In this document: piece after piece, positions 5,457 through 63,468 of the stretch
Layout of the letters: every line of letters begins with the position of its first letter
Numbering within the stretch: the first letter of the stretch is position 1
From: Tubulanus polymorphus
Lineage: Eukaryota > Animalia > Nemertea
DNA: 64,000 bases
NCBI RefSeq assembly: GCF_964204645.1
Contig: NC_134032.1
Span: 16,294,275 to 16,358,274 of the forward strand
Reading direction: 5' to 3'
Made by a program: the position numbers and the translations under genes
Notes under the pieces: generated by a model
The model's database searches: none
Seen by the model: only the letters and a program-made list of their open reading frames with translations
What the model was told of the DNA's origin: nothing

Positions 5457-5625
5457 GGCCAAATTCGGTTTTCGTAATTAGTCGACCTATAGTCGGAACT
5501 AATAACCGAATGCACTTATTTCCAAACTATTTCCGGACTATAGTTCCGACTAACTTTGGAGTAATCAGTCTGATTATTCCAAGGACTAAATGACATGCGA
5601 CCAACTCCGATAACTGTAGTTGGCC
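5457..5625. mobile_element. Harbinger/PIF-like MITE
   Basis: GGCC termini, CTG 3-bp target duplication, empty site of the same host sequence at 5327-5358, related copy at 43538-43686. Confidence 0.65.
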
Positions 5626-19076: not shown

Positions 19077-19463
19077 CTAATATCCCTTCACTGAAAGAAT
19101 ATTTTTCAAATCAGTCAACAAATCCGGAATTGTCCCAGAACGCAGCCGCTCCTCCCACATTCCATCCGTATGCCGGGCCACCACCTCTACCTCTCGGGCC
19201 ACTCGATCACTCGCCAGCTTTTTGGCGAGTGACCGAGTGACCGCCCGAGATACGGATGGAGGAGCAGGAGGAGCAGGACCCGCACCATCCCCAGCCCCAC
19301 CACCATCCCTCCTCGGCCTCTTCCTATTTATTCTTACCCCTTCCTCCTGATTGCCTTGATCAGCCACACCATCCGCAGGGGCAACTCTTGCCTCCCCTCC
19401 CTGAGGAGCCACGACGACCGCAACTTTTCTTTTTCTTTTAGTTTTTTTGGGCGGTGGTCGTGT
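19077..19463 (-). CDS. Orphan gene last exon TRPPPKKTKRKRKV...LSVKGY*
   Basis: tttacAG acceptor, phase 0, 387 nt to TAG; includes ORF 19077-19412. Confidence 0.75.
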   Translation of the reverse strand, partial: TRPPPKKTKRKRKVAVVVAPQGGEARVAPADGVADQGNQEEGVRINRKRPRRDGGGAGDGAGPAPPAPPSVSRAVTRSLAKKLASDRVAREVEVVARHTDGMWEERLRSGTIPDLLTDLKNILSVKGY

Positions 19464-21047: not shown

Positions 21048-21094
<47 letters not shown>

Positions 21095-30000: not shown

Positions 30001-31867
30001 TTGTCAGGGGACGAGGGTAATGAGCTGTCAGGGGACGAGGGTAACAGCTGTCAGGGGACGAGGGTAACGAGCTGTCAGGGGACGAGGGTAACGAGCTGTC
30101 AGGGGACGAGGGTAACAGCTGTCAGGGGACAAGGGTAACAGCTGTCAGGGGACGAGGGTAACAGCTGTCAGGGGACGAGGGTAACAGCTGTCAGGGGACG
30201 GCAGTAATGAGCTGTCACGGGACTTCCTAAGAAAACTAGATTTTATCTACAGACAGACGAAAAGTGAACGCAATAGCGCAATAACTTAAGTCCCCAGTGG
30301 GATAAAAAAAGCATGAATTAGTTTGGACTTAAATGCAAGATGTTTGTTTAATCACTTACAGCTGACGGTCCTGGTATTGGTGACAAATTCTGTAAAGATA
30401 AAATGAAACAAAATATTAGATTGATATTCATGAATACATGTATCACTGATTCTTCAGTAGTTCTATAACCAATCTAAAAATTCAACACCAGTCTAAACTC
30501 ATTTTAGTTCTATAACCAATCTAACAACTTAAGACCAATCTAAGCTCATTTTAATTCTAAAACTATTCTATCAACTTGAGACCAGTCTAAGCTCATTTTA
30601 GTTCTATAACCAATCTAACAACTTAAGACCAGTCTAAGCTTATTTTAGTTCTATAACCAATCTAACAACTTCAGACCAGTCTAAACTCATTTTAGTTCTA
30701 TAACCAATCTAACAACTTAAGACCAGTCTAAACTCATTTTAGTTCTATAACCAATCTAACAACTTGAGACCAGTCTAAACTCATTCTAGTTCTATAACCA
30801 ATCTAACAACTTGAGACCAGCCTAAACTCATTTTAGTTCTATAAACAGAGAGAACACATGTAGTTGTTACTTACAGGGGTCGGCGGCGGCGGTGGCGCCA
30901 CTTGTCCCGGCGTCGGAGGTACGATCTGTAAATACAATAAAAAAATACACAATTTAAAACAAGAACTGATTTTAGTTTTAAGGTTGGAGGGAAGTCTATC
31001 AGTTTTGGGGTTGGAGGGAAGTCGATCAGTTTTGGGGTTGGAGGGAAGTCGATCAGTTTTTGGGTTGGAGGGAAGTCTATCAGTTTTGGGGTTGGAGGGA
31101 AGTCTATCAGTTTTGGGGTTGGAGGGAAGTCGATCAGTTTTGGGGTTGGAGGGAAGTCTATCAGTTTTGGGGTTGGAGGGAAGTCTATCAGTTTTGGGGT
31201 TGGAGGGAAGTCTATCAGTTTTCTTGTTGATTGTATTTATTTCTGGAGTAGCATCAGAAACATGGTTCAAAGTTCCCCCTCCCCCCAGCTGCTTCAGACT
31301 CACTACATGTGTTTATTGTAGTTATAACTTACCGACTCGCCGAGTTGTTGTTGCTGCTGTTGCTGCTGCTGTTGATGCTGGAAAAGAAAAATATTCATGC
31401 AATGACAATTGAGCTTTAGTGATAATTATGATAGATATGGATATAGGAAGGACACAGCTGTGAAATTACACTTTCAAATACGATAATAAAATAGAATAAA
31501 TGTATCGCCATGGGAACGACCAATAATCGGTGCCAAATATCGTTATTTAAATGTTACCATGGTTACTATAAATAAAAACCAGTTCACGATAGCATTTTTC
31601 ACAGAATAAATTTGCTCAATCGACCTCAAATTCAATTCAAATACCGTTTTATTCAAAACGTTGCCAAATTCGTTCATGTTTATCATTGGTCTCATTAACG
31701 GTGTTATTTAACAGAACACTTTGACTCTACCTGTTTTTACACTTGTTTTCTAATATAGTATGAATAAATTAGCATGAAAGCAGTAAATTTGAACTTACCG
31801 AAGGACTTGACGTAAGCGGCCCGGGCCGCCCGCGCGCGCCAATTGATTTTTTTGTTGCTTTTGGCAT
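19077..31867 (-). CDS. Orphan Pro-rich, probably nuclear protein (about 343 aa), 10 coding exons including five consecutive phase-0 micro-exons
   Basis: Exons 31799-31867 (ATG), 31333-31377, 30875-30925, 30360-30389, 29069-29113, 28529-28573, 25482-25542, 20791-20856, 20118-20350, 19077-19463 total 1032 nt in one open frame. Eight of nine donors are GTAAGT (one GTAAGA) and all acceptors are YAG. Paralogous exon copies at 37-41 kb show synonymous changes and an in-frame indel. Confidence 0.75.
20118..20350 (-). CDS. Orphan gene exon 9 FVDILQECPF...EGDLTE
   Basis: 233 nt, acAG/GTAAGA, phase 1-0; inside ORF 20106-20402. Confidence 0.75.
20791..20856 (-). CDS. Orphan gene exon 8 TLAFRIRRAFRREEFVRLFLPE
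   Basis: 66 nt, acAG/GTAAGT, phase 1-1. Confidence 0.75.
21050..21093. repeat. (TA)n microsatellite
   Basis: Directly visible. Confidence 0.95.
21335..22878. repeat. About 80-bp AT-rich minisatellite, about 19 copies
   Basis: Unit contains TTCTCTCTCTTTTCATCAGAGCATCAGAAAATTCACTATTTTTTTACTAAAAATT. Confidence 0.95.
23885..24915. repeat. 29-bp (27-bp variant) minisatellite, about 36 copies
   Basis: GCTAAAGCTAGGGGCACACGAGCTATAAA. Confidence 0.97.
25482..25542 (-). CDS. Orphan gene exon 7 SFDDSGPLLPPETPPALQAR
   Basis: 61 nt, acAG/GTAAGT, phase 0-1. Confidence 0.7.
25684..28240. repeat. 44-bp minisatellite, about 58 copies
   Basis: GTGAACGCCACCTACACYGTGGCGCGTGTTATCTATAACTGATA. Confidence 0.97.
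28325..28481 (-). mobile_element. Truncated tRNA-derived SINE
   Basis: Minus strand reads GGATTCGAACCCC (B box), GTGTCCTCGCGCGAGACACTT, CTCTCCACCCAGCGGTAAATGGGTACC; absent from the paralogous intron copies at 37531 and 40296. Confidence 0.65.
28529..28573 (-). CDS. Orphan gene exon 6 NTTLDSTVPLSPVRP
   Basis: 45 nt, ctAG/GTAAGT, phase 0-0; copy at 40222-40266 differs by three synonymous changes only. Confidence 0.75.
29069..29113 (-). CDS. Orphan gene exon 5 GRAPPHQRQSPRLTP
   Basis: 45 nt, ctAG/GTAAGT, phase 0-0. Confidence 0.7.
29477..29656. repeat. 28-bp GC-rich minisatellite, about 6 copies
   Basis: GGTMCCCAGCGATGTGGCGCCGGTATCG. Confidence 0.95.
29900..30222. repeat. 22/24-bp minisatellite, about 14 copies
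   Basis: AGCTGTCAGGGGACGAGGGTAA core. Confidence 0.95.
30360..30389 (-). CDS. Orphan gene exon 4 NLSPIPGPSA
   Basis: 30 nt, acAG/GTAAGT, phase 0-0. Confidence 0.7.
30459..30843. repeat. 47-bp minisatellite, about 8 copies
   Basis: AGTTCTATAACCAATCTAACAACTTAAGACCAGTCTAAACTCATTTT. Confidence 0.93.
30875..30925 (-). CDS. Orphan gene exon 3 IVPPTPGQVAPPPPPTP
   Basis: 51 nt, acAG/GTAAGT, phase 0-0. Confidence 0.7.
30982..31221. repeat. 27-bp minisatellite, about 9 copies
   Basis: GGTTGGAGGGAAGTCTATCAGTTTTGG. Confidence 0.95.
31333..31377 (-). CDS. Orphan gene exon 2 HQQQQQQQQQQLGES
   Basis: 45 nt, ccAG/GTAAGT, phase 0-0. Confidence 0.7.
31799..31867 (-). CDS. Orphan gene exon 1 MPKATKKSIGARGRPGPLTSSPS
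   Basis: tctAG acceptor at 31871-31872, ATG 31865-31867, GTAAGT donor. Confidence 0.7.
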
Positions 31868-33395
31868 ATTCTAGAAAAATAAATAAAACAATTAAATCAT
31901 ATGAAAATAGATTATTATATCAGACATGAATCATGCACAGTTTAGTCAATTATTCCTGTATATGGTTCACTCAGTAGAGTACTGAACATAAAGTAACTAA
32001 TAAACAGGTGAATCTAGTAACAATCGCTCAACAGAATGTAGAGTACAAGTCAGACACCTCGGCTACTAATGGATTTCTCTTCAAAAATGTGAATTAAGCT
32101 ATTTCAATCACAAGGTTGACCATTTCCCGACTTAAGCTCCCACTAACTGACAATCGGTTCCACATGTCGACTATCTGTAACCCATGATTTATCATATTAT
32201 ATCAAAAATTAATGCTATTTAACCTTGGCCTGACTCAAAAATGGCGTTGGAACAGCAGCAGTGAAACCACGCCAATAATTTACTAAATGACCTTTTTTTC
32301 TATTCTATACTGTTTTTGAAAATTGACGTAAATTCACTGCAGCAAAATAAAACCTGTCAAAAATTGGCAATTTGCTGCGACAATCAAAAATTGCTTCAGT
32401 GGCGTTGGAAGTGTAGAGACTGCAGCGGCGATAATTAACTGAATGACGTTTGTTTTTCTTTGAATACCACATTTTTGAAGAAATTAAGTAAATTTGCCGC
32501 AGCAATATTTAGAACCTGTCCAAAATCGGCGTTTGGCTGCGGCAATAAAAATTGCTTCCAACACCCCTGCTCAATATGGCCGCCAATTTGACCTTGACTT
32601 CACTGTAAATATGGCCGCCGGCTAGGAAAAATTTTCCACCAGCAAAAATGCTTTAAAATGATAAATCATGACCGATGTATATGTGATATCTAATAATTAC
32701 TAACTGGAGCTAGGAACTGATCTGATGTGTTTATCATCAGTTTATCATTCACTAAGGCCTTCAATACATGTGTATAATATTTACGCTGATTTAACGAAAA
32801 GTTGAAAAGTTGTTGCACTCACTTTAATGTCTGTGAAACGAATGATTCGATCAACTGACCGCTGGTCATCGTTCAGTGACCCGCACCATCCTCAACCAAT
32901 CAACACGCGTCTTCGTGCATTTCATATTCAAATAAGCTCCGCCTCCACGATTCAAACCATATGTTCAACGCAAAATAAGGCTAATGTTGAGATGAGTTCA
33001 TGTTCATGCACAAAACGGAAGTAATACCGAAAAACAAAAAGGCAGCTTCTGAATCGAAGGAGGGTTCTTCAGGTGGTTCAACTGAACTAACCATCTCGCA
33101 TAAATCGGTGTTCATTGATTTAAAAACCGATATTAAAGTTTGAATCAGAATTATTACTGATATATTCAAAATGTGGTAAATGTTATGAAATAATTCAAAA
33201 TATAATGTAAAATGAATATTTCCGGTCATTATTTTTCAGCAATGAATTTTCAATGTAGACTCTGCTGCACGAGGAGTACTCCGACTCACTTACCAGGCAA
33301 CGGAATAACGCCAGTCCGGAGTTCGCCTGCCAGGGTATGGAACAGCGGCCGCGCGCGATTTGACAGACCCCGGTATGATCCTAATGCGACAAGCA

Positions 33396-33503: not shown

Positions 33504-35169
33504 GGCAGTATAAGTTAGTTCACAGATTTACCGCTATTGATTAGTATTGGGGCAGCACCCGACGGTCAAGAATTGACGAACTGATACACCTCAACATCTT
33601 ACTGTGGCATGCGAGGTTCAACATCATAGTATTCCATAGTACTAGTTTTACCTCGAAAGTTAATCAAAGTATCACCATCAATCAAACTCACACTTTGATT
33701 AAGAGCTGTAGAACTTTATCGTTATAAGCATACTGTATACAGAAATGCTTGTTATCGATGGAATATTCTAAATTCCCGAAAAAATACAATTATGCAAAAT
33801 CGTTCAATAAAATTTGTTTTAAGAGTTGAATCCGTTTTCTATTTCTTCAATCATTTCCTGAAGGTCGAGTTGCGCAGTGTGGGTCATGATAAGACTGGTC
33901 TGTCTTAAAGTTGTTACGATTTGCTAGTGAACTTAAGATGGTCTAAAAGAGACTGGGTCTTAATTACATCAATGAGTAAATTCCACCATTCTCTGCTAAG
34001 AGTAATAAGATGTGAGCTCAGATGAATCCCACAGAAAACATTACAACCAGAAAAAACAACTTTAAAATGAAGAAGCAATGTATATGATCGACAAACTAGT
34101 TTTATTAGAAGGCTTACGTTGGATCACATTTTTTTTAAAGACATGATCATGTAATATAAACATTACAGAAAATGATTTTAAAGTATGTTATAGACTTAAC
34201 ATTAGACAACTATAAATTAACTTTTGCTCAAAAAAAATAATATTTACATTTTGATTTATTTCAGAAATGAACAACAATTTCTCAATAAAAATGACATTAA
34301 TTTTAGAAGATGACTACACAATTTGTTTATTTCAATTAACACGAGAGCCTTATAATCATGATGTAATAATAAGAACAAGAAAAACTGGTATAAAATCGAC
34401 ACAAATCATGTCCAGAAACAAAACAGTTAAACCTCCTTAAGTCATTCTAGTTGTGACAATCATTGTTTCAACAACTTATCTGAATTGCAAATAAAATTGG
34501 GCGCCAAAAATAGAGATGACTTCAGTAATGTGACGACTTATCCAAATTATGACTTACACTTAGTGAATAGAATTAGAAATACAAATTGTGACTCAAAAAT
34601 AGAGATGACTTCAGTAATGTGACAATTCAATCAAGTTTGATTTTATAACATAAATTGTAAATGATTATGTTCAGGTTTTGCTCTGAATAGTTTTGTTGTA
34701 TCATACTGAATATTGTCCCTTAATGAAATATCACCCACAAAGTCTCATCCACTTTCGGAATATTGTCCATTTCTTTGATGTATATCTTCATTTCTCTTTC
34801 ATTTGAGTTATTAACATTTCCCTGAAAATACATTAAAATTGAAAATATCACTGCAGCTGTATCTTACGAGAATAAAACTTGCATGAACTAGAAACATTTG
34901 GTTTCAGTCTCTGGGTCCAGTTTCACAAAATGAAACAAATAACTTCTAAGAGTTAGACTTTTTAGAGAATTGGAACCCATGGCCCTAATTCACAAAACAA
35001 AGGAAAACTCTAAATTCTATTTAATTTCGTCAATTCCTTTCTGTGAAACTTTGCCCAGTTTTAAGGTGGATATTGTTATCAGAGCACATTGTAAATACCT
35101 TTTGAGCAGCGGATGTAAATATTCTCAGACGGATTGGTTCCATTAAACGCACCCAGCATAGCACGGACT

Positions 35170-35462
35170 CAATGCTGATTTCATCCCAGTCTCAATGCCG
35201 ATTTCATCCCAGTATCAATGCTGATTTCATCCCAGTATCAATGCTGATTTCATCCCAGTATCAATGCTGATTTCATCCCAGTATCAATGCTGATTTCATC
35301 CCAGTATCAATGCTGATTTAATCCCAGTATCAATGCTGATTTCATCCCAGTATCAATGCTGATTTAATCCCAGTCTCAATGCTGATTTAATCCCAGTATC
35401 AATGCTGATTTAATCCCAGTCTCAATGCTGATTTCATCCCAGTCTCAATGCTGATTTCATCC
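35170..35462. repeat. 23-bp minisatellite, about 13 copies
   Basis: CAATGCTGATTTCATCCCAGTAT. Confidence 0.95.
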
Positions 35463-35640
35463 CTGTGTCACTAAAATTAGAATAATGAAATCATAGATGG
35501 TGAAAATATACAAAGAGAAGAACAGACACTATGTGTAATAAATGAAACATGTGACCTGAGCTAGTAACAGCAACGGTTAGCGGACTAGTGGAGAATAAGA
35601 CACACAGGGGTACCACTAAATCAGGGAAAACAGGCCTCAG

Positions 35641-38600
35641 TCAGTGAGAACTATGTATGAGCGGACTGACGGATCGTCTCTCGATCTGCATGCATAAACC
35701 ACCTACATCCAGTCCGAAACGAAAAAAGACAAATGACAACAAGGCAAAGTGGCGCAAAAAATAACTAGACTGCAGTAGTGAGGTGGTTATGGTGCAGGGG
35801 TTGTTTGCAATCATACAGATCCTGGATCGATCGCCCAAAGAGCTCTCGATCTGCGTGCTTAAAATACCTCTCAATCCAGTCCAAATGACAAGTAGTGAAG
35901 TAGTGCAGAAAATAATGTGACCTTAGCAACAAGAAGGTGGTTATGGTGTTGGGGGGGGGGGGGTAAAGTTGCTCATGCTGCAGCTACCAACAAACTTCTC
36001 AAATCGGAAATGACTTTTAAAACGCAGGAACAATAATCAGTATGGATGTACAATCTGTAGATGGACTGTCCTTAGAGATCCACAATATCCAATAATAGTA
36101 TGGAATGAATATTCTCTAGTTCTACACAGTGCAGTCGTTATTCAGGAATTGTATATTTTCTTCACTTGAAAAAAAAGTGTTCTGCAAGAGATGAAGCTGC
36201 CAGTCACGAAGCAACTCTTAACTGAAAGCACAATGTGGGACTGCTCCTGCCAACATTCTGAGCAGTCCTCAGCATCTCCTGGAGCTCCACCATCGTGATG
36301 ACCAACCACCAAACTAAAACAACCAGGTACATCAGATGATCTGGCGGGGCTATACGGGCAATAACACAGCAGGACCTCGCCTGAAAGTATTGCCATTGAA
36401 TTGGCTAAGCAACAAGGAGAGTCTGAACAAGGCTACGAGGCAGCTACCCAACTATGGGAATCAGTAATCAGGTGCGCGAAAAAAATTAATCCCACCCCAA
36501 AGCTGTCTCAACAGCCTGAGGAGCTAGCTCCACGAACCCCTGAGTTGGCTCCTCCGCAGGTGGTGGACCCTGTTTCGCCGGTGCAGGTGGTTGCGCCCAC
36601 CGTATCTTCGGATACGGAGGTCGCGCCGCCTGTTGCCCCGGAGCAGGAAGTTGCCCCTGCCGTGGTAGCCCCGACAGAGGCGCCACAGGTTCAGGCTCCT
36701 GGCCCGCGCAGATCGCCCCAGAAAAAATCGAAAGGAGGTCGATTATACAGGAGGTTCGGGGCGATCTACTCCTAAAAAAAGAAAACGTGCGGCTCCTCCC
36801 CAACAGCCAGATACATCGGAGGAGTCGAGTGATGAGGAGTTACCTACAGCTCCTAGAGCCTCACCGCCAGGGTCCTCACCACCAGCGTGACGACCAACAC
36901 CACCAAAAACAACAACCGCTCCGGCGGGGGTAGAACCCTCCCCCGTCGTAGAGCTCGTCGCGCGGGGCCCTGGCTGGTCAAGGATAATTGAGTTCGACGA
37001 CCCAATTACCTTGCTCCGCGACGTCGAAGGGGCATTCCATGGGGAATACAAATTTATAAAGCGGAGGAGAACACGTTGATTCTCCTCACCCCTTCACTCG
37101 CCGTCACTCCGTGGGCATCAAGATCAGCCCACACAGCACGTCTGCAGATCGACACTTCAAGAGTTGTCCCTGTGGATGGTGCGGCTTATGAAAGCAATCA
37201 GGAGGAAGGGGTAAGAGTAAATAGGAAGCAGCCGAGCTGATGGTGGTGGGGCTGGCGAGTGATCGAGTGGCCCGAGAGGTAGAGGTGGTGGCCTGGCATA
37301 CCGATGGAGAGTGGGAGGAGCGTTAATTACCCTAATACCTGGGGGGCTCCTTACAGTTCATCTCACTGGAATATTTAATAGATTTGATGAATTCAGTTTC
37401 TCGCAGTGAAAATGCATGATTTAATCTTTAAAATCATTTTATTTTTCTAGAACACGACATTTGACTCGGACGAAACCGTGCAGCTGTCGCCCGTACGACC
37501 GGTAAGTTATAATTCTAGTTTGATGTTTTTCAGTACTGTAAGATGACATAAATTCCGGATTTTTTCTTATATTTTACTAATTGTTGAAATTCAAAACAAA
37601 TGCTATATTCTATTTTATCATCGTATTTGAAAGTGTAATTTCACAGCTGTGTCCTTCCTATATCTATATCTATCATAATTATCACTAAAGCTCAATTGTC
37701 ATTGCATGAATATTTTTTTTTTCTTTTCCAGCATCAACAGCAGCAGCAACAGCAGCAACAACAACTCGGCGAGTCGGTAAGTTATAACTACAATAAACAC
37801 ATGTAGTGAGTCTGAAGCAGCTGGGGGAGGGGAGGGGGAGGGGGGAACGTTGAACCATGTTTCTGCTGCTACTGCTGACACGTAATGATCCCCCCTCATA
37901 TACAACACCTCATACTACAGTAATGTATTGTAGTATTTGATTACTACTCCAGGTGGTTCGCCAGTTCTTTACAGACACGACCACCTCCAAAAAAGAAAAA
38001 CAAACGTGGTTCACCAGTGAGGGGAAGCAAGAGTCATCACCAGTGGTTGATGAGCTTATTGAAGGTAATCAGGAGGAAGGGGTAGGGTTAGATAGGGGGA
38101 AGAGGCCAAGGCGGGATGATGGTGGGTCCTGAATCTATAGATCTCTCAATCTGCATGCTTAAACCACCAGCAAAATACATCTACATCCAGTCCGAAAGAA
38201 AGAAGAGACAAATGACAACAAAGCAAAGTGGTGCAAAAAATAACTAGACCGCAGCAATGAGGTGGTTGTGGTGCAGGGGTTGTTTGCAATCAAACAGATC
38301 CTGGATCGATCACCTATTAAGCTCTCGATCTGCGTGCTCAAATTACCTCTAAATCCAGTCCAAAATAACAACAAGGTGAAATAATGCAGAAAATAACTAG
38401 ACCGCAGTAATGAGAAGGTTATCGTGGGTTGAGGGGGGTAAAGTTGCTCATGCTGCTGCTACCAACAAACTTCTCACATATCAAAGGGTAGCCATGCCAT
38501 GCCGTGGTAGCCCCGACAGAGGCGCCACAGGTTCAGGCTCCTGGCCCGTGCAGATCGCCCCGGAAAAATCGAAAGGAAGCTGACTCACGGGAGGTTTGGG

Positions 38601-41424
38601 GCGATCGGGTATCAAGATCAGCCCACACAGCACGTCTGCAGATCGACACTTCTAGAGTTGTCCCTGTGGATGGTGCGGCTGATGAAAGCAATCGGGAGGA
38701 AGGGGTAAGAGTAAATAGGAAGCAGCCGAGGAGGGATGGTGGTGGGGCAGGTGCGGGTCCTGCTGCACCTCCTCTATCAGAAATTAGTCAGAAAGAGTCC
38801 GGGGACGGCTGTCTGAAGGAGATCTGACGGAGGTAAGAATCTTTATTTGTTTTGTCTTATTCTATTTGAGTTTGAAAGATGAATTGAATTCAATGTTTTG
38901 AGTCTGCACAGTTATCACTCAACTCAGAATTCAGTTGTTCAGTAAATATTCTATAATCCTATACGTCTAGTTAGCAACAAATTCAACAAAAACCTATTAA
39001 TGGAATTATAGATTTCCACGTAAAACCGTTTCGATCCGAGTAATTTTTTTTCGAATAACGGATATTTTCGCCGATCAGCGCCATCTGCGGAGTCATGCCG
39101 TCTGACTGTTGATTGTCATAGATAACATCATAAATATAAAATAAAAAAGTTAAATTTAAAAAAAAATTAAATTAAATTAAAAAAAAAAAAAATAAAATAA
39201 AATAAATTTGTATTCGTTAAGAAATTGCGGAAAGTACAATTTTGACAGCATTTGCCCTTTAATCCGATTGATCTGCTCTGTTTTGGGGCAACCTCCTCGA
39301 TAGAGTTAGAAGAACAGAATCGTTGTTCCGGCACTGGACCCGGCGGGGTTCTGTTTCAGGATCCACAGTTCACCTATGACAAACTGCTTTAGAATTCAAA
39401 CTAGTTTTGTAATTAATGTATGTGATTTTAATGAATTGTATTATTGTTTTTACAGCACTTGCATTCCGTATTCGACGTGCGTTCCGGCGAGAGGAGTTCG
39501 TCAGATTATTTCTACCTGAGTGTAAGTAGTTCAACTATTTTCATACAATATCCTTAAGGGCAGCTATAAGAGTGTCACCTGATATCTCAAAATCTAGTCA
39601 AAATATTCAACCAATTATTAGCCCCACAAAGTTTAGAATCTCTGATACTCAATTTGCTCGTAGCGAGACAAACAATTCACGTTTCAGTTAGAAAAACTAC
39701 ATTTTTCGTTGAATCATTAAGAAATTGTAATGTGACAAATAATCATGCAACCTTACAACAAAGTAAAACTGTTTAAATTACTGATCTTTTCCTAGTTATT
39801 CCAAAAACAATAAACAATCTGATCAGCGATTGCGGCTAAATCAACGCAATAACTATTGATATAACATTCTAATAGTGTCAGGCGCCCCCTGGTGGGATAA
39901 TATTCATATTTACAGCGTTTGAAACCCTTCGACTCGTTGTTTAATGTATTTCTCTCTTTCTATTTTACAGTCATAGATATTCTACAGGAGTGCCCCTTTA
40001 GGGGGCCCATTGAGGATTTTGCGCAAAACTTGGTACCAGATAGGATCCCACCACCGGTGGCCCGGCATACCGATGGAGAGTGGGAGGAGCGTTAATTACC
40101 CCTTATACCCGGGGGGGCTCTTTACAGTTCATCTCACTGGAATATTTAATAGATTTGATGAATTCAGTTTGTCGCAGTGAAAATGCACGATTTAATCTTT
40201 AAAATGATTTTATTTTTCTAGAACACGACATTAGACTCCACCGTCCCGCTGTCGCCCGTACGACCGGTAAGTTATAATTCTAGTTTGATGTTTTTCAGTA
40301 CTATAAGATGACAATGATGTATATCCCAAATAAATGTCTCATATTCGTCATCCTTAATAATTTTTCTTTTCATTTCAGCTGAAAGTATTGCCATTGAATT
40401 TGCTAAACAACAAGGAGAGGCTGAACAAGGCTACGAGGCAGCTACCCAACTATGGGAATCAGTAATAAGGTGTGGCAAAAAAAATAATCCCACCCCAAAG
40501 CTGTCTCAACAGCCTGAGGAGCCAGCTCCACGAACCCCTGAGTTGGCTCCTCCGCAGGTGGTGGACCCTGTTTCGCCGGTGCAGGTGTTTATAGGTGTTT
40601 ATTTGCTGAATCGCTGGTTTTCTCATTTTGATTTTTAATACTGATATTTAATTCTATGCTAAACAAATTTTTTATTTTTTCTCTTTACAAACACGACCAC
40701 CGCCTAAAAAAACCAAAAGAAAAAGTTGCGGTCGTCGTGGCTCCTCAGGGAGGGGAGGCAAGAGTTGCCCCTGCGGATGGTGCGGCTGATCAAGGCAATC
40801 AGGAGGAAGGGGTAAGAATAAATAGGAAGAGGCCGAGGAGAGATGGTGGTGGGGCTGGGGCTGGTGCGGGTCCTGCTCCTCCTGCTCCTCCATCCGTATC
40901 TCGGGCGGTCACTCGTTCACTCGCCAGACAATGTTGTTCCAGCACTACAGCATTGATCAGAAAGAGTCCGAGGGCGGCTGTATGGTGAAAAATTTTTAGC
41001 CTGACCGATGAGGAATCACCTGACCAGGCGGGGAATCACCTGACCTAATTTACATTTTTGAGGAGAAATCCATTAGTAGCCGAGGTGTCTGACTTGTACT
41101 TTACATTCTGTTGAGCGATTGTTACTAGATTCACCTGTTTATTAGTTACTTTATGTTCAGTACTCTACTGAGTGAACCATATACAGGAATAATTGACTAA
41201 ACTGTGCATGATTCATGTCTGATATAATAATCTATTTTCATATGATTTAATTGTTTTATTTATTTTTCTAGAAAATGCCAAAAGCTATAAAAAAATCTGT
41301 TCGCGGGCGCGGGCGGCCCGGGCCGCTTACGTCAAGTCCTTCGGTAAGTTCAAATTTACTGCTTTCATGCTAATTTATTCATACTATATTAGAAAACAAG
41401 TGTAAAAACAGGTAGAGTCAAAGT
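35641..41424 (+). pseudogene. Scrambled, inverted mosaic of orphan-gene-family exons and intron flanks
   Basis: Segments match reverse complements of parts of 19.1-32.1 kb in non-colinear order. Exon copies at 37451-37501, 37732-37776, 39456-39521, 39971-40059, 40222-40266, 40691-40926 (acceptor AG mutated to AA) and 41272-41343. Confidence 0.8.
36230..37079 (+). pseudogene. Intronless, disrupted distant paralog of the orphan gene (Pro/Ala/Glu-rich)
   Basis: ORF 36401-36775 plus a frameshifted continuation ending VELVARGPGWSRIIEFDDPITLLRDVEGAFHGEYKFIKRRRTR* (TGA 37077-37079); internal stops; 36381-36586 matches the intron-flanked exon at 40379-40584. Confidence 0.55.
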
Positions 41425-41934
41425 CCCTGCTTGCAGAGATTTAATATTTCTACCCTGCATGATTTTTGTAATTCTTTTTATTGTTGATGGTGAAATAATT
41501 ATCATTATTCTCTTTCTATTCGCTTTAAATCAAACTTTTATAAATAATATTTTGCAAAAATCTACGCGAAGAAAGTTGGATATAGGTGGCGCTGTTTAAC
41601 ATGTACAGGTCGAGCTGCTATACGCGTCCCATGGAAAGTGAAAATAAATTTGTATTCATATTTATTTAAGAAGGATCTAAGATTCATCAGAGTGAGAAAT
41701 ACAAGCAGTGAAGAACCAATTAATTTAATGCACAATCATATATTTATATATAAACTATAGGAGTTTAAACCTTAATTTTCATATTTTTTCCTAAGTCCCT
41801 ATTTTTCTTGCAATCATAAAAAGACAGCAGAAACAGCTGAACAGAAAAACATTGAAAACATTGGAAACAGCTGAACAGATAACATTGGAAACAGCTGAAC
41901 AGATAACATTGGAAACAGATGAAAAGATAACAAA

Positions 41935-42190
41935 AATCACCTGACCGGGCGGGGAATCACCTGACCGGGCGGGGAATGACCTGACCGGGCGGGGAATCAC
42001 CTGACCGGGCGGGGAATGACCTGACCGGGCGGGGAATCACCTGACCGGGCGAGGAATCACCTGACCGGGCGGGGAATCACCTGACCGGGCGGGGAATCAC
42101 CTGACCGGGCGGGGAATCACCTGACCGGGCGGGAAATCACCTGACCGGGCGGGGAATCACCTGACCGGGCGGGGAATCACCTGACCGGGC
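41935..42190. repeat. 20-bp minisatellite, about 13 copies
   Basis: TCACCTGACCGGGCGGGGAA; a short related seed at 41000-41046. Confidence 0.95.
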
Positions 42191-42291
42191 TGGGAGGCGG
42201 GGAGTTTTGAAAACTTGCATCTTTATTTCCTATACACTGAAAAAATTCTTAAGGCTTAAAGATTGAAATATTTCTACTTATCTTTTCTTTC

Positions 42292-42921
42292 ATGCTGCTC
42301 CTGCGAGTGTGGTGGTCTCAGTGGATGCTGCTCCTGCGAGTGTGGTGGTCTCAGTGGATGCTGCTCGTGAGAGTGTGGTGGTCTCAGTGGATGCTGCTCC
42401 TGCGAGTGTGGTGGTCTCAGTGGATGCTGCTCCTGCGAGTGTGGTGGTCTCAGTGGATGCTGCTCCTGCGAGTGTGGTGGTCTCAGTGGATGCTGCTCCT
42501 GCGAGTGTGGTGGTCTCAGTGGATGCTGCTCCTGCGAGTGTGGTGGTCTCAGTGGATGCTGCTCCTGCGAGTGTGGTGGTCTCAGTGGATGCTGCTCCTG
42601 AGAGTGTGGTGGTCCCAGTGGATGCTGCTCCTGCGAGTGTGGTGGTCCCAGTGGATGCTGCTCCTGCGAGTGTGGTGGTCTCAGTGGATGCTGCTCGTGA
42701 GAGTGTGGTGGTCTCAGTGGATGCTGCTCCTGCGAGTGTGGTGGTCCCAGTGGATGCTGCTCCTGCGAGTGTGGTGGTCTCAGTGGATGCTGCTCGTGAG
42801 AGTGTGGAGGTCTCAGTGGATGCTGCTCCTGCGAGTGTGGAGGTCTCAGTGGATGCTGCTCGTGAGAGTGTGGTGGTCTCAGTGGATGCTGCTCCTGCGA
42901 GTGTGGTGGTCTCAGTGGATG
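42292..42921. repeat. 33-bp minisatellite, about 19 copies
   Basis: GATGCTGCTCCTGCGAGTGTGGTGGTCTCAGTG. Confidence 0.96.
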
Positions 42922-43537
42922 TTCCATGTTCTCAAGAGGAATGCCTGAAATCATAAAATTCAAATGTTATAAAAACCAGTTTGATTGATCTGAAAATTAT
43001 GAAGCAAAGGTGGTCACAGGGGCGCGGTCCTAGTATTGTGTGACACTAAGGTAACGATTGAAACAGCAGCAGCAGAAGCTGCAGCAGCAACATCAATGGT
43101 TAGAGACTTTGATGGGTGTAATGCTGGTGGTGGCGGTATCAGTCAGTGGAGAGTTGTAAAACCCTAAACTAACAACATTTCACGGATTTGGTAACTTGTG
43201 ACCTGTACGTGTTTTTTAGATGACATCATATCGGGTCTGTTCATTCTCATGTTGTGCAATAAATGTTTTTAATCATCTTTGGTGATAACCTCTTTCGACT
43301 GGGCTTATAAATATAACTGGTTTAGTTTGTGATAGAGACCACACACTGGTTACAGACAGTGATACCGGCTGAAGCGCACACGTGTCACTACAGTCGTATT
43401 AGTGAAATGCTGAAGAGGAAGTGACTGGATTGCGGGGATTCCCCTGCAGAAATTCATCGCGCATTAAACTCTTTTGCTGCAGGTGTAACGATTATATTGG
43501 AGAGCGGAAGGAGGTAGATGCAATCCTCGCTTGCCAG

Positions 43538-43686
43538 GGCCACCTTCGGTTATCTGAGTTAGTCGAACTAAGTGAAACCGAATGTCCGTTAGTCGGAACT
43601 ATAGTCCGGAAATAGTTCGAAAATCAAGCGCATTCGATTATTTGTTCCGACCACTAGTCGACTAGATACGAAAACCGAATTTGGCC
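43538..43686. mobile_element. Harbinger/PIF-like MITE, same family as 5457-5625
   Basis: TIRs GGCCACCTTCGGTT / AACCGAATTTGGCC, CAG target duplication. Confidence 0.7.
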
Positions 43687-45188
43687 CAGGGGTCTGGTAT
43701 CGCTCAACGACTGACGTCATATATCAACTTGCGGAATACTTCCTTTCGCTGATCGCCGATTGGTCCATTTAACGGAATATCCAACTGACGGTTGTTACAA
43801 GCGCTGTGATTGGCCCGGTTCGAGAACAGATCAAAGCGCAGTGGGTTCGAATCCCTAGTGGGTGTCAAGATGAACTGAGGGTGGGACAACTTATAAAACA
43901 ATGGCATAATCCACGACAAATTTTGGTGGTGATTGCAAATTTACTTCCTTTGTGCAACTTCTAAGCAAAGTCCTGATGCTTTCTAGAACATTAACTGCAT
44001 TGAGATTTCCAGACAATAAATATGAATGGTGCCCTTTTGTTTATAGAATTATCAGCCTCGTCTTGTGAAAATGTGTGCCCCCTTTCTACCTATGGGATCA
44101 GACTATTATGAAAAGGGGCAGGAAATTTTGAAGACAGTAGCACATGCGCGTGGAGCATCATACCGTCTGAATCCGGAGCCAGCCTAGTTTCGTTGAATGT
44201 CAAACCACTTGCTTCCAGATAGGAAATTGCGCAACAAGTTTTCAACACCTTTCATTGAGCAAGAAACAAACGGTTTTCAGGAATCCTAATGAATATATGA
44301 TTTAAATAACTTACTCTTGTCTGTTTTATCCGACCAAAAGGCGCTCATCGAGACATTCTTTCATTATAGTGCTTTTAACTGTTTTTTAGATACCTACAAA
44401 AGAATACAAAATATTGTACATTTCTAAATGAAATAAATGGAGCTTAAAACGACAAGAATTAAACAGTACCAATTAGTTCAATTGTAATTTGAAACAATTG
44501 GCCGAGACAGTTTTGTGAACAAATTTAAACCTAGATATTAACTGTTTAATTATGTGACCAATCCCAATTAAACTGAAAAGTTTAACAATTCACATTTCGA
44601 AAATGAACTTTTTGTTTTTAACTATTCGAGTCAAACTAAACCGATAACAGTTGAACCGGGTTCAGAAAAATGTAGTTAAAATGAAAAAGAGTTCGTGAAG
44701 CTTTTCTAAAATATATTTCTATCGGTTTGAACACTTACAGTTGAACCAAATGTAGAAGTTCCTGAGTTTCGGGAGCATTTTTCGCAGACGTGTTTGCTGT
44801 CTGGCGTCCTGTGGTCGAAAGGAATGTTGGATCAGGGTCGCGGTCCATCCATGCGTCCGTTGAACAATACCTCTCATATCCAATGGTAGCGTCGGAAATG
44901 GAATGCGCGCCGAGACCATTGTGAAAAAAGTCGATTAGAATCGAACTGACCTGAACCTACATCCGGATACAATGGCAACAGTGGACCCAACATACGAAAT
45001 ATATAGGTTATAATGGGTGATAGATCCACTTACATGCTGTATGCTATTTTATAAACAGATGCTGTACTTTCTAGATAGAATAAATCAATTTCAAACATTT
45101 TTCAAATTCAGCATCTTTCTTAAGTCGATTTAATGAAAATGCGATGTGGAGGTGAAAAATTATTTTATACAAGACAAAACGTGAGACA

Positions 45189-45886: not shown

Positions 45887-46062
45887 CCGTACGGTGCTGC
45901 CGCTATGCTCATTGTTAGCGGGATTTTCATACACTAACGTAAGTCAACTCTGGCAAGCTAGGGTGAGGGAGTATAACTGGACAGCACGTCGATTGCCAGA
46001 GTTGGCTTTAGTTAGTGTATGAAAATCCCGCTAACGATGAGCTTAGAAGCAGCACCGTACGG
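45887..46062. mobile_element. Fold-back MITE-like palindrome
   Basis: About 70-bp arms CCGTACGGTGCTGC...CAACTCTGGCAA and TTGCCAGAGTTG...GCAGCACCGTACGG. Confidence 0.7.
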
Positions 46063-49000
46063 CTGGATTTATCGGATATTGACCTGAAATATATAGTTCA
46101 CTAAAAATCTAATAGATGGCGATCATATAGGAATTCACAATGAGTGTTTAATTTCAATCAATTAGGTATCTACATTAATAGACTTGGGTTTGAACCCGGG
46201 ACGCACTCCGAGTGGGACAGCATTTAATGCATAATAGCAAAATCACTTAAAATCAAATTGATTGCAGAAAAATCCATACTTTTTTATTCTTCAAACAAAT
46301 GATTATAAATTTCAATTCGAAATCAACAAAAACTATACCAGGATCGCTGATACCAGGATCGCTGATACCAGGATCGCTGGAATCAGGAATCACTGATACC
46401 AGGATCGCTGATACCAGGATCGCTGGAATCAGGAATCACAGATACCAGGATCGCTGGAATCAGGAATCACTGATACCAGGATCGCTGATTTCAGGAATCA
46501 CTGATACCAGGATCGCTGAAAATCACTTCAAACACCTTTCACAATTTATTTATTTATACAAGAAAAAGTATCAAAACGTAGCGAAAAATTGGGTTAATTT
46601 TGAAAGTTAAGAATCCTCGTTTTAAAATCTATTCACAAATTTACACAGCATTATTTGGGTTCGCATGAGAAAATGCGATCAAGTTTCGCACATTCAGCAG
46701 TATTCGATTTCAGATTTTTTTAAACTCATCACCGAGTTAAAAATGAGTTCCTGGGTCCAGAGGGCGCTGCATATGCTCAATAGTTAGTTAGAGTTAACCA
46801 GTGGATGGTTGATATAGTAACAATTAAAACTTAATTGTAATCATGTTATCTTTCAGCAGGTTATACATATGTAACTCACGTTTGAGGAACTGCAGCGCCC
46901 TCTAAATATTGTAGAGTGCAACTAGGTCCAAGATTTCCTTCAAATCGAAAAAAAAACATTCTAAATAGGATAAAACATGTATATTGATTATAAATATGGA
47001 ATAAATTATGAATATGTGCCATAAAAGTTACCAGCATCTCGGCTTCACGAGGTGACCTTGAACCTTGACCTTGCAATGACAAGGTCAAGGTACTAAGCGT
47101 ACCGTACTTGTATTACTGAACCGGAACTCGACCGGAAATGAGTGACGTGTGATATTGAGATTGATAGAACGTCGCCCTTAATTACAATAAGCACTCTGTT
47201 AAACACAGAAACCCTAGGGCTGATCTCATCCTCGCGAGCCCTAGGGCTTCACGTCCTCACTAGCCCTAGAGCTTCTCGTCCCTCACTAGCCCTAAGGCTT
47301 CACATGCTCGTGAGCCATTTAATGCTTATACAATCGTGTAGATATATCTATGAAAGTGACTTCTAATTATCATTTTACTAGATATATTATATAAATTAAC
47401 AAATATCTCTTTGACTCAGTAATAAACAATGACTAGACAGCTGTAGGTTAGACAGCTGCTAAATAGACAGCCGCTAAATAGACAGCCGATAGATAGACAG
47501 CCGCTAACTATCATTTCATCACAACGAAATATTCACTATTTCTGTTTTTCCTATTTTTAAGATTCGTCAGAAAATTCGCGGACGAAATAAATTCTCTTTC
47601 GACTATAGACCCTTAAAGAGTAATGACGTCATAGTGGGGATGCAAGTAAGCGGCCATCTTTTTTCGGAAGGATCTATAGTATTAATAGACGAAATAAAAC
47701 GAATATAATTCTACGTTCTAATTCATACATCTGACATTCCTATGACGTCATCATCGACGACGTTAGATGACGTCATAACGTACTTCGAACACGCAACACA
47801 AAAAACCGTTAGCGGGATTTTCATACACTAACGTAAGTCAACTCTGGCAAGCTAGGGTGAGGGAGTATAACTGGACAGCACGTCGATTGCCAGAGTTGGC
47901 TTTAGTTAGTGTATGAAAATCCCGCTAACGATGAGCTTAGCAGCAGCACCGTACGGCTGGATTTATCGGATATTGACCTGAAATATATAGTTCACTAAAA
48001 ATCTAATAGATGGCGATCATATAGGAATTCACAATGAGTGTTTAATTTCAATCAATTAGGTATCTACATTAATAGACTTGGGTTTGAACCCGGGACGCAC
48101 TCCGAGTGGGACAGCATTTAATGCATAATAGCAAAATCACTTAAAATCAAATTGATTGCAGAAAAATCCATACTTTTTTATTCTTCAAACAAATGATTAT
48201 AAATTTCAATTCGAAATCAACAAAAACTATACCAGGATCGCTGATACCAGGATCGCTGATACCAGGATCGCTGGAATCAGGAATCACTGATACCAGGATC
48301 GCTGATACCAGGATCGCTGGAATCAGGAATCACAGATACCAGGATCGCTGGAATCAGGAATCACTGATACCAGGATCGCTGATTTCAGGAATCACTGATA
48401 CCAGGATCGCTGAAAATCACTTCAAACACCTTTCACAATTTATTTATTTATACAAGAAAAAGTATCAAAACGTAGCGAAAAATTGGGTTAATTTTGAAAG
48501 TTAAGAATCCTCGTTTTAAAATCTATTCACAAATTTACACAGCATTATTTGGGTTCGCATGAGAAAATGCGATCAAGTTTCGCACATTCAGCAGTATTCG
48601 ATTTCAGATTTTTTAAAACTCATCACCGAGTTAAAAATGAGTTCCTGGGTCCAGAGGGCGCTGCATATGCTCAATAGTTAGTTAGAGTTAACCAGTGGAT
48701 GGTTGATATAGTAACAATTAAAACTTAATTGTAATCATGTTATCTTTCAGCAGGTTATACATATGTAACTCACGTTTGAGGAACTGCAGCGCCCTCTAAA
48801 TATTGTAGAGTGCAACTAGGTCCAAGATTTCCTTCAAATCGAAAAAAAAACATTCTAAATAGGATAAAACATGTATATTGATTATAAATATGGAATAAAT
48901 TATGAATATGTGCCATAAAAGTTACCAGCATCTCGGCTTCACGAGGTGACCTTGAACCTTGACCTTGCAATGACAAGGTCAAGGTACTAAGCGTACCGTA

Positions 49001-49706
49001 CTTGTATTACTGAACCGGAACTCGACCGGAAATGAGTGACGTGTGATATTGAGATTGATAGAACGTCGCCCTTAATTACAATAAGCACTCTGTTAAACAC
49101 AGAAACCCTAGGGCTGATCTCATCCTCGCGAGCCCTAGGGCTTCACGTCCTCACTAGCCCTAGAGCTTCTCGTCCCTCACTAGCCCTAAGGCTTCACATG
49201 CTCGTGAGCCATTTAATGCTTATACAATCGTGTAGATATATCTATGAAAGTGACTTCTAATTATCATTTTACTAGATATATTATATAAATTAACAAATAT
49301 CTCTTTGACTCAGTAATAAACAATGACTAGACAGCTGTAGGTTAGACAGCTGCTAAATAGACAGCCGCTAAATAGACAGCCGATAGATAGACAGCCGCTA
49401 ACTATCATTTCATCACAACGAAATATTCACTATTTCTGTTTTTCCTATTTTTAAGATTCGTCAGAAAATTCGCGGACGAAATAAATTCTCTTTCGACTAT
49501 AGACCCTTAAAGAGTAATGACGTCATAGTGGGGATGCAAGTAAGCGGCCATCTTTTTTCGGAAGGATCTATAGTATTAATAGACGAAATAAAACGAATAT
49601 AATTCTACGTTCTAATTCATACATCTGACATTCCTATGACGTCATCATCGACGACGTTAGATGACGTCATAACGTACTTCGAACACGCAACACAAAAAAC
49701 CGTTAG
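45914..49706. repeat. 1,894-bp direct tandem duplication (45914-47807, 47808-49701)
   Basis: Identical ORF pairs offset by 1894; GTTAG at 45914, 47808 and 49702; only about two differences noticed. Confidence 0.95.

Positions 49707-50333: not shown

Positions 50334-63468
<13,135 letters not shown>

Follow-up and report, generated by a model that had tools for sequence, protein, structure and literature searches.

An inverted mosaic of orphan-gene fragments in Tubulanus polymorphus, best read as a tandem array formed by error-prone replication and repair

Beside an intact orphan gene of Tubulanus polymorphus lies a block in which pieces of that gene recur inverted and out of order, and the question is what such a structure represents. 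In the window (the whole stretch of 64,000 nucleotides that was analysed), the initial annotation had seen exon shuffling caught in progress, through template switching or Helitron/Pack-type capture, or else a possible source of antisense or double-stranded RNA against the intact gene.

19077-31869, minus strand: intact parent gene, ten exons

Exon 1 of this gene holds 69 nt of coding sequence, the next six exons measure 45, 51, 30, 45, 45 and 25 nt, and the last three are exon 8 (66 nt), exon 9 (233 nt, 20118-20350) and exon 10 (387 nt, 19077-19463). Strong splice signals mark exons 2-6, which are micro-exons of 30-51 nt with symmetric 0-0 phases, and minisatellites fill the introns. Upstream of each of the eight sense-strand GTAAGT donors lie a pyrimidine-rich AG acceptor and an open frame. 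The orphan gene family is genuine and multi-copy: more than 40 copies were found, 13 of 14 distinct copies have an unbroken exon-10 ORF, and exon 10 has a dN/dS of 0.07-0.22 among them. No relatives of this amplified, lineage-specific family were detectable; its product is basic with NLS-like runs. Schistosome micro-exon genes (MEGs) also have symmetric micro-exons and encode secreted products. The parent gene, though not the block, resembles them in its runs of short, frame-neutral exons with strong splice sites, but its product looks nuclear and basic, its last exon is large, conserved and under purifying selection, and there is no sequence relationship between the two.

When the block was mapped against the gene by self-BLASTN, E-values ranged from 1e-7 to 0, and the matches are therefore far beyond chance. 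All those listed in the initial annotation were reproduced within a few bases and in reverse complement, so that the mosaic is real and inverted relative to its parent. The block had been delimited as 35641-41424; pieces of the gene, at 71-97% identity (3-29% divergence from source) and in non-colinear order, make up 36381-41424, which is C8:16330655-16335698, while 35647-36380 is a spacer common to a paralogous locus. The features are as follows.

35647-36380, strand not assigned: spacer unrelated to the gene, 94.6% identical to and colinear with C8:15152666-15153382; diverged internal duplicate at 38142-38479 (82%)
36381-37156, plus strand: type-B long exon copy of unit alpha; 124-aa ORF, then frameshifted
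37158-37322, plus strand: exon-10 core and tail (37251-37322 = 19218-19147, 94.4%); 2-bp deletion; 69-bp deletion bounded by GCTGG; ends at the codon for ...WEER
37322-37548, plus strand: exon-6 module of unit alpha (37322-37529 = 28703-28501, 92.8%); splice sites intact; 6-bp in-frame insertion
37606-37873, plus strand: exon-2 (polyQ) module with flanks (= 31498-31247, 94-96.5%); exon and splice sites 74/74
37966-38126, plus strand: old diverged exon-10 relic, 71-76% to exon 10; acceptor context still visible
38142-38774, plus strand: start of unit beta, with spacer duplicate, type-B middle piece (38497-38606) and exon-10 core (38607-38774); colinear with unit alpha at 82-94%
38775-40055, plus strand: 1.27-kb templated insertion in the exon-10 copy of unit beta, in the window only and missing from the paralogous mosaic; about 12 nt of filler, exon 9 end and intron 9 (38787-39115 = 20163-19835, 96.7%), intron 7 (39107-39136 = 21218-21189, 30/30), an A-rich stretch, then exon 8, intron 8 and exon 9 start (39264-40059 = 21048-20262, 96.9%)
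40056-40313, plus strand: exon-10 tail (40056-40091 = 19182-19147) and exon-6 module of unit beta (40091-40294 = 28703-28501, 95.1%); same junction as at 37322
40304-40587, plus strand: 5' part of type-B exon with acceptor; 93.7% to C8:15016533-15016816, 95.7% to 36381-36589
40590-40926, plus strand: intron 9 end and exon-10 copy (= 19564-19223, 95.9%); acceptor AG changed to AA at 40689-40690; 5-bp frameshift deletion; truncated at the hairpin
40927-41045, plus strand: mixed piece with 61 nt of no assigned source (recurring in the paralogous units), a few bases from upstream of the gene and two 20-bp units belonging to the repeat of 41935-42195
41046-41424, plus strand: exon-1 module ending the mosaic (= 32096-31718, 97.4%); ATG and GTAAGT donor intact

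The pieces are exon-centred, as had been claimed: seven of nine independent fragments include exon sequence, an excess over random locus sampling (P = 0.05 without and 0.002 with repeat-dominated placements), which hints at selection or an exon bias. Their order is indeed scrambled relative to the gene, but the block has an internal order of its own, consisting of about 2.5 degenerate direct repeats of one mosaic unit: alpha (35677-37548) and beta (38142-40313) are colinear, and a third, gamma (40379-41424), is partial. At C8:15.12-15.18 Mb, 1.18 Mb away, lies a paralogous segmental duplication that shares the flanks and the chimeric junctions of the block. It holds six 2687-bp units, 98.7% alike, and at their end an exon-1 module (C8:15172575-15172956), cut at the same base as the copy in the window. 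On both sides of the mosaic the flanks are colinear (35649 = C8:15152610; 41425 = C8:15172958), yet they stand 5.8 kb apart in the window but 20.3 kb apart at the paralogous locus. If the 1.27-kb insertion is left aside, 38497-41424 and one paralogous unit are colinear. At both loci the mosaic exon-1 copy is nearest to the local gene (2.6% and 2.2-2.4%, whereas the two genes differ by 4.1%), which indicates gene conversion.

Short microhomology of 1-9 bp was found at the junctions, with filler in places, in agreement with the initial annotation. The junction between the exon-10 tail and exon 6 (1 bp shared) is identical base for base at 37322 and 40091 and occurs six more times at the paralogous locus, bearing out the view that chimeric junctions were themselves re-duplicated. 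The reported fusion of exon 9 with the exon-10 tail through GGTG (4 bp, 40056-40059) was also recovered, with an ORF that runs through the junction and ends ...DRIPPPVARHTDGEWEER-stop. The 69-bp deletion, at about 37254, is flanked by the 5-bp GCTGG, and TGATTG (6 of 9 bp) links intron 9 with intron 7 at 39107-39115. Two breakpoints, 19223 and 19218, flank the 6-nt loop of a hairpin in the parent gene that none of 200 shuffled sequences matched in folding.

19192-19248, minus strand: strong hairpin in exon 10, -25.1 kcal/mol, z = -7.8 (DNA fold)

Microhomology, filler and breakpoints at the hairpin loop make template switching, one of the mechanisms first proposed, the best fit. Complex rearrangements by replication-based template switching are known as FoSTeS/MMBIR (Hastings et al. 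2009, PMC2621351), and switching also occurs between diverged repeats (Anand et al. 2014, PMC4215184). The mosaic resembles them in its clustered breakpoints with microhomology and short fillers, in inverted templated insertions copied from within about 20 kb, in switches between diverged paralogues (type-B exon to exon 10) and in the involvement of a hairpin-forming palindrome. It differs in being a layered evolutionary end product with at least 14 distinct junctions instead of a single observed event, in its later tandem amplification and segmental duplication, and in that the mechanism is deduced from junction signatures alone.

The age of the structure argues against shuffling caught in progress. 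On contig C6, distant copies of a macro-repeat of about 34 kb have at the corresponding position, following the homologue of a 23-bp repeat, a simple fragment of exon 10 in inverted orientation, so that the seed is old. Constraint on this copy is relaxed (dN/dS 0.72 versus 0.1-0.2 in real exon 10s), and a Met-to-Glu change (DGEW) is common to it, to the tails in the window and to those at the paralogous locus. The flanks of the segmental duplication differ by 4-7%, and the outer boundaries of the mosaic are older than that duplication.

The block is best read as the product of error-prone DNA replication and repair, and neither as a working shuffled gene nor as transposon cargo. It is probably a tandem array in decay, made up of non-coding gene-fragment units, head-to-head with the parent gene and differing in copy number between loci; since the six paralogous units are so alike, the array there is young or homogenised and not simply decaying. 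From the observed structure, junctions, shared boundaries, defects and restricted distribution, and from a comparison of three locus types, we infer the following order of events and mode of repair. Upstream of the gene, the ancestor of the 34-kb macro-repeat would have had an inverted copy of part of exon 10, together with the 3' flanking sequence of that exon and short pieces of exon 1. To this seed, in the C8 lineage, fragments centred on exons 1, 2, 5 and 6 and on the long exon of the second (type-B) paralogue may have been added through microhomology-mediated template switching and deletion, with recurrent breaks at the exon-10 hairpin. A unit of about 2.7 kb would then have been amplified head-to-tail through unequal exchange, and the whole region copied in a segmental duplication exceeding 50 kb. 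The copy in the window was presumably reduced to its 2.5 degenerate units and gained, after that duplication, the 1.27-kb insertion templated by exons 8-9 of the adjacent gene, while the other copy came to hold six. Gene conversion with the adjacent gene may preserve the similarity of some modules.

Productive exon shuffling, in which the units are or recently were expressed chimeric genes mixing micro-exons with alternative 3' exons, would draw on the symmetric micro-exons and on module copies that retain splice sites and carry in-frame indels, but at 3-5% divergence retained splice sites, and the ATG kept by the exon-1 copy, are expected by chance. The exon said to be missing from the intact gene is not novel, being the 5' part of a type-B paralogue (40304-40587). 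The long exon copy at 36381-37156 is 96% identical to C8:15016608-15017378 and C8:15898887-15899658 and 82% to C4:2736732-2737107, where the type-B ORF is intact (251 aa) and relative to which the window copy is frameshifted. The phases of the exon at 40304-40587, 1-0 like those of exon 9, had been formally correctly given, and a GT donor is created at its junction; but here this phase-1 exon is preceded by exon 6, which ends in phase 0, and it therefore reads into a stop, after 27 codons in that frame. Judged by their sequence, the copies in the window are disabled: the exon-10 acceptor is gone, a 5-bp deletion shifts the frame, exon 9 is split and neighbouring pieces are frame-incompatible. 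The copy at 40590-40926, cut at the hairpin, lacks the conserved C-terminal 43 residues, the fusion of exons 9 and 10 terminates after 11 codons, and the exon-1 module comes last, with no family exon downstream. At the paralogous locus each unit bears an exon-1 module with ATG and upstream sequence, but neither of the two units examined has the C-terminal domain, and in one of them a TAG interrupts the frame; a partial plus-strand copy there retains a complete, intact exon 10, which appears recently copied, so that its low dN/dS is inherited. The modules of exons 1, 5 and 6 are limited to the two loci, the only two that are complex, whose exon orders share a common descent and would have diverged through tandem duplication, deletion and a single templated insertion, contrary to an active shuffling system with many orders. 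New working genes thus seem very doubtful. Even less probable is that a Helitron, Pack-MULE or CACTA element captured the fragments and brought them here. Pack-MULEs and Helitrons do capture gene fragments, and the block likewise is a chimera of exon-plus-intron fragments of at least two genes in one orientation, with short dispersed SINE/MITE-like repeats nearby. Capture is nevertheless largely refuted by the confinement of modules and chimeric junctions to the same position in two copies of one segmental duplication, by the lack of terminal inverted repeats bounding the block or its units, of target-site duplications and of transposase (no Pfam domain in any ORF of at least 85 aa within 32-50 kb, where long ORFs are repeat-derived), by head-to-tail amplification instead of dispersal, and by junction signatures that match replication and repair. 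To a chimeric joining of repeat-family reads during assembly we give hardly any credence. The region is about 30% minisatellite and part of a multi-copy family, and three junctions, at 38775-38787, 39107-39115 and 40056-40059, are window-only, but copies 3-29% away from their sources are not misplaced source reads, which excludes such a chimera, and most junctions, as well as both colinear flanks, recur at an independently assembled, diverged locus.

That the inverted array might be an antisense, hairpin or small-RNA source (hpRNA, endo-siRNA or piRNA-like) silencing the amplified orphan family is a reading of function, compatible with a structural origin by template switching and tandem amplification, and on present evidence we consider it unlikely. 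Gene conversion and fresh exon capture would, on this reading, hold the array similar to its targets. Every gene-derived piece runs opposite to the adjacent gene, about 2.6 kb matches it at 93-97%, with long stretches free of mismatches (exon 2, 74/74; exon 9 end, 49/49), the fragments are exon-biased, and the mosaic copies follow the local gene; but pieces within the mosaic share one orientation, so that it forms no hairpin by itself, a hairpin would need 10-22 kb of minus-strand read-through into the gene or separate antisense transcription, with no promoter known, and close inverted repeats gene-convert regardless. The inverted exon-10 fragment retained at the same place in the distant macro-repeat units may persist merely through co-amplification with its unit. 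Substitutions are in local excess in exon 1 of the gene (13.0% between the two C8 genes versus 4.3% in flanks; 8.7% between parent and mosaic copy versus 0.4%), but these substitutions fall within a run of GC dinucleotides, which may be no more than a mutable stretch, and the other micro-exons have no such excess. An amplified, lineage-specific, basic family with NLS-like runs recalls the Dox family of Drosophila simulans and the Nmy/Tmy hpRNAs, where suppressors arose from inverted copies of amplified young genes (PMC10292708, PMC10317233, bioRxiv 10.1101/2021.08.05.454923). Like such hpRNA/Su(Ste)-type loci, the family here has inverted, partly chimeric, tandem self-fragments, but the block has no intrinsic inverted repeat inside one plausible transcript, and of the two arms one would be the gene and the other an array at a distance of 3.5-22 kb.

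To our knowledge, no structure like the block, read as a tandem array of repair-derived fragments, has been reported from a nemertean. Near chromosome ends, gene fragments are found in macrosatellite arrays and in mosaic segmental duplications, both subtelomeric and pericentromeric. The block shares with them a position within about 0.3-1.5 Mb of a contig end, the juxtaposition of modules from more than one source gene, concerted evolution with its neighbours and a copy number that varies between paralogous copies (about 2.5 versus 6 units). It differs from them in that its units are small (2.7 kb) and consist almost entirely of exon-centred pieces of the adjacent orphan gene and a paralogue.

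The block at 35641-41424 (plus strand), built of inverted exon pieces of the minus-strand orphan gene at 19077-31869 (the parent gene), is a real and well structured mosaic. Most likely it is a tandem array of gene fragments in decay that template switching, unequal exchange and gene conversion would have produced, which adds a case to a class of structure already known. When we compared 35-42 kb with the window by self-BLASTN, the gene-derived pieces of this mosaic were 71-97% identical to their source (E-values down to 0), and every one of them was reverse-complementary to 19-32 kb. The initial annotation had listed these matches together with their inverted orientation, short microhomology at the junctions and a chimeric exon 10-exon 6 junction present twice; this description is confirmed, because self-BLASTN reproduces each match, mostly within a few bases, and the junctions could be read straight from the sequence.

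Microhomology at the mosaic junctions measures 1-9 bp, with filler in some. The junction of the exon-10 tail with exon 6 is identical at 37322 and 40091 (shared base G, 1 bp), GCTGG (5 bp) stands at the borders of a 69-bp deletion at about 37254, TGATTG (6 of 9) at 39107-39115 links intron 9 to intron 7, and about 12 nt of filler lie at 38775-38786. At 40056-40059, GGTG (4 bp) links exon 9 to the exon-10 tail, and the resulting ORF stops 11 codons on. Assembly error is unlikely as the source of the mosaic, since all the pieces have diverged from their sources and most of the junctions are found again at a second locus.

The parent gene itself is real. Within 13 kb, the minus strand holds exactly eight GTAAGT donors. 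Upstream of every one lie an AG acceptor rich in pyrimidines and an open reading frame, and the gene has ten exons:

Exons 1-8, minus strand: 69 (coding), 45, 51, 30, 45, 45, 25 and 66 nt, from GTAAGT donors, acceptors and frames
20118-20350, minus strand: exon 9, with donor GTAAGA
19077-19463, minus strand: exon 10, the last exon

Of these, exons 2-6 are symmetric (phase 0-0). Among the 14 distinct family copies retrieved, 13 had an unbroken exon-10 ORF, with dN/dS of 0.07-0.22, and a genome search found more than 40 copies of exon 10, mostly within tandem macro-repeats whose unit is a whole segment of about 30 kb matching window 6-34 kb (the orphan gene and its upstream neighbour region). 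On C6, another contig of the same genome, such an array at 1.07-1.75 Mb comprises at least 17 units that recur about every 30-35 kb; neighbouring units were 99.4-99.7% identical among those examined, and one is colinear with window 6-34 kb. Contig C3 carries at least 10 units, with an array at 0.42-0.74 Mb (period about 45 kb) and three more copies at 1.25-1.33 Mb, spaced by about 30-45 kb. Protein queries for the parent gene were made exon by exon: phmmer returned 0 matches for exon 10 against 1.84 billion representatives, Pfam gave nothing significant for exon 9, exon 10, the mosaic ORFs or the ORF of a second paralogue (type B), and ESM Atlas held no usable match for the family. Rfam (gathering thresholds) and a tRNA scan found no RNA gene in the window, which has 40% GC, is 30% masked as minisatellites by TRF and lies on a 16.7-Mb contig, about 0.3 Mb short of its end (genome 268 Mb, 77 contigs). 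Short dispersed repeats of about 135-175 bp occur at 28344-28478, 32397-32569 and 43523-43690 (also 5453-5554), and copies at 83-93% identity are found by the dozen across all large contigs; the first three are likely SINE/MITE-type elements, one lying in intron 6 and another directly upstream of the parent gene.

The piece at 40304-40587, which contains the exon listed before as absent from the intact gene (the 'novel exon'), was traced to the second orphan paralogue, type B, as was 36381-37156. An intact type-B ORF was found on contig C4:

C4:2736643-2737398 (L039:6643-7398 in the retrieved locus), plus strand: intact type-B ORF of 251 aa, its C-terminus resembling that of exon 10

This ORF is Pro-rich with KKRKR-type runs; it had no Pfam or ESM Atlas relatives, and a word-indexed sequence search gave 0 matches. 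Two further type-B copies, 96% identical, lie on the window's contig (C8, NC_134032.1) within their own duplicated segment. A promoter region common to the window and the C4 type-B locus was considered and dropped, because the common piece, 32397-32569, is one of the dispersed SINE/MITE-like repeats.

The second locus that shares the mosaic lies 1.18 Mb away, at C8:15.12-15.18 Mb. Window 5-35.6 kb is colinear with C8:15.120-15.1526 Mb (92-99%) and window 41425-45180 with C8:15172958-15176564 (93%), so that flanks common to both loci enclose the mosaic, and the segmental duplication as a whole exceeds 50 kb. The mosaic interval itself spans 5.8 kb in the window as against 20.3 kb at the paralogous locus, which holds in turn a partial plus-strand gene copy, a 38-bp satellite and six head-to-tail units of 2687 bp (C8:15156241-15172340) that are 98.7% alike (2.5 units compared; units 4-6 from coordinates only). 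The order within a unit is a 68-nt upstream piece, exon-1 module (a module being an exon piece with its flanks), exon-5 module, type-B middle piece, exon-10 core and tail, exon-6 module, type-B 5' exon and truncated exon 10, and the terminal exon-1 module of the array is cut at the exact base where the window block ends. The partial copy is compact:

C8:15154173-15155687, plus strand: upstream sequence, exon 6 with its natural flanks, type-B 5' exon (the 'novel exon') and a complete intact exon 10 with 3' flank

This copy would be the best candidate for an expressed chimera, even though its exon 6 and type-B exon are out of phase.

Set beside these six units, the window block resolves into two degenerate units and a partial third:

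35677-37548, plus strand: unit alpha, degenerate, colinear with beta
38142-40313, plus strand: unit beta, degenerate, colinear with alpha
40379-41424, plus strand: unit gamma, partial third unit

Head-to-tail units whose copy number differs between paralogous loci give the block a macrosatellite-like character. Window positions 38497-41424 run colinear with a single unit of the paralogous locus and continue into the beginning of the following one, except at 38775-40055, where a 1.27-kb insertion replaces 80 bp of beta's exon-10 copy. This insertion was drawn, inverted and permuted, from at least two templates in 19835-21218 of the neighbouring gene, 18 kb off. Much of the scrambling reported by the initial annotation thus comes down to tandem duplication, deletion and one templated insertion. 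Apparent exon shuffling can therefore come from tandem duplication and templated insertion without a dedicated system.

The insertion joins several templated nearby segments non-colinearly, as in MMBIR/FoSTeS, and the mosaic junctions show microhomology within the 1-10 bp associated with such events, as well as short filler. Exon 10 also contains a very stable hairpin (19192-19248, minus strand; 23-bp stem, -25.1 kcal/mol as DNA, z = -7.8) that overlaps the codons for ...TRSLAKKLASDRV.... Two independent rearrangement breakpoints, the truncation at 40926 and the tail start at 37251, fall on opposite sides of its loop, and both recur in the units of the paralogous locus. At 37156/37158, where type-B exon sequence gives way to exon 10, the changeover lies in homologous sequence that has diverged. 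Features of this kind have been described for replication-based template switching (PMC2621351, PMC4215184), and we infer this mechanism from the sequence. The locus offers a cleanly resolved natural example of how gene fragments are put together, multiplied and worn down next to a gene with many copies, with junctions at the nucleotide level and a hairpin-associated breakpoint.

In the C6 macro-repeat unit, the place that corresponds to the mosaic, directly after a homologue of the 23-bp repeat (35169-35470), is taken by an inverted copy of exon 10 together with its 3' flank and small parts of exon 1. This copy has a dN/dS of 0.72 against its own gene, and it shares a Met-to-Glu change (DGEW) with the exon-10 tails of the window and of the other C8 locus. 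From this shared position and shared DGEW, the mosaic seed must predate the split of the C6 and C8 copies (dS about 0.2); the suggestion of a rearrangement 'caught in progress' is thus not supported. In distance matrices, the exon-1 module was closest to the local gene at each locus (window 2.6%, other locus 2.2-2.4%, versus 4.1% gene to gene), and the exon-6 and exon-10 modules of the window were also nearest to the window gene. Since the outer boundaries of the mosaic are common to both loci, gene conversion after duplication is the simplest reading of this local likeness. Three evolutionary stages are visible: on C6 the simple seed, at the paralogous locus an array of six units, and in the window a copy in decay.

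A new chimeric gene would call for an uninterrupted splice-compatible frame across the mosaic modules, and we found none in the window. The exon-10 copy there has its acceptor changed from AG to AA (40689-40690), a 5-bp frameshift deletion and no conserved C-terminal 43 residues, while that of alpha has 2-bp and 69-bp deletions; the type-B copy is frameshifted, exon 9 is split, and the exon-1 module closes the block, no family exon lying beyond it. The 'novel exon', whose phases were noted before as matching those of exon 9, clashes with its neighbour: it requires phase 1, exon 6 ahead of it ends in phase 0, and in that frame a stop comes after 27 codons. At the other locus, the C-terminal domain is absent from both units examined, one of which has an in-frame TAG. 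The micro-exon copies of the mosaic do retain their splice sites, as is expected by chance because divergence is only 3-5%. Capture by a Helitron or Pack-type transposon, the other source proposed, was rejected. No terminal inverted repeats of Pack-MULE or CACTA type enclose either the block or any unit (the pairs that came closest, of 16-25 nt, are AT-rich or inside exon 10), and 32-50 kb contains neither transposon-like ORFs or Pfam domains nor a Rep/helicase-like ORF. A genome search, which scores only its best candidates and may overlook highly diverged copies, placed the modules of exons 1, 5 and 6 and the chimeric junctions only at the window and its segmental-duplication partner, in the same position, and found no module copies at non-homologous sites; the sole dispersed matches were the three short SINE/MITE-like elements, which bear no relation to the mosaic. 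An active shuffling system with many exon orders is likewise disfavoured by the two loci found, whose orders are related.

The exon bias, the exon-1 excess, the inverted orientation and the old seed together leave room for a silencing-RNA role. About 2.6 kb of the mosaic is reverse-complementary to the adjoining gene at 93-97%, an extended inverted homology such as marks hpRNA and endo-siRNA loci. hpRNA loci (PMC10292708) are the likeness for such a role, although the mosaic, all of whose pieces share one orientation, has no internal inverted repeat. Of nine independent fragments, seven contain exon sequence, which is an excess of borderline significance (P = 0.05 to 0.002, according to the null model). 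In every comparison, substitutions are locally more frequent in exon 1 than in its flanks, 13.0% versus 4.3% between the two C8 genes and 8.7% versus 0.4% between gene and mosaic copy, with ATG, frame and donor preserved despite the differences, and the excess may reflect a mutable GC-dinucleotide run or diversifying change. A short GC-rich stretch at 31829-31856 (exon 1 codons 4-12), with its copy at 41286-41313, holds most of the between-copy differences. A general rule of exons evolving faster than introns was rejected for the two C8 genes, exon 1 (and weakly exon 8) being the only such case and exons 2-7 not. It is conceivable, though we consider it improbable, that the inverted arrays would be the suppressor side of an intragenomic conflict, supplying antisense or small RNAs against a lineage-specific nuclear-protein family of more than 40 copies, with exons (at least exon 1) outpacing introns to escape and the arrays tracking them by gene conversion and fresh templated exon capture. 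Such a reading would liken the ribbon-worm arrays to the Dox/hpRNA and Stellate/Su(Ste) arms race and, if true, would make them a rare non-insect case of coevolution between a gene family and its suppressor.

Beyond the mosaic, a 1,899-bp segment without recognisable coding content is present as a direct tandem duplicate at 45914-49706 (45914-47812 and 47808-49706), and its 99.9% identity belongs to a very recent duplication. Further on, 50675-52366 (minus strand) holds a 563-aa open exon, Ser/Thr-rich with a Lys/Glu-repeat segment and without a Pfam match, which is probably part of an unrelated gene.
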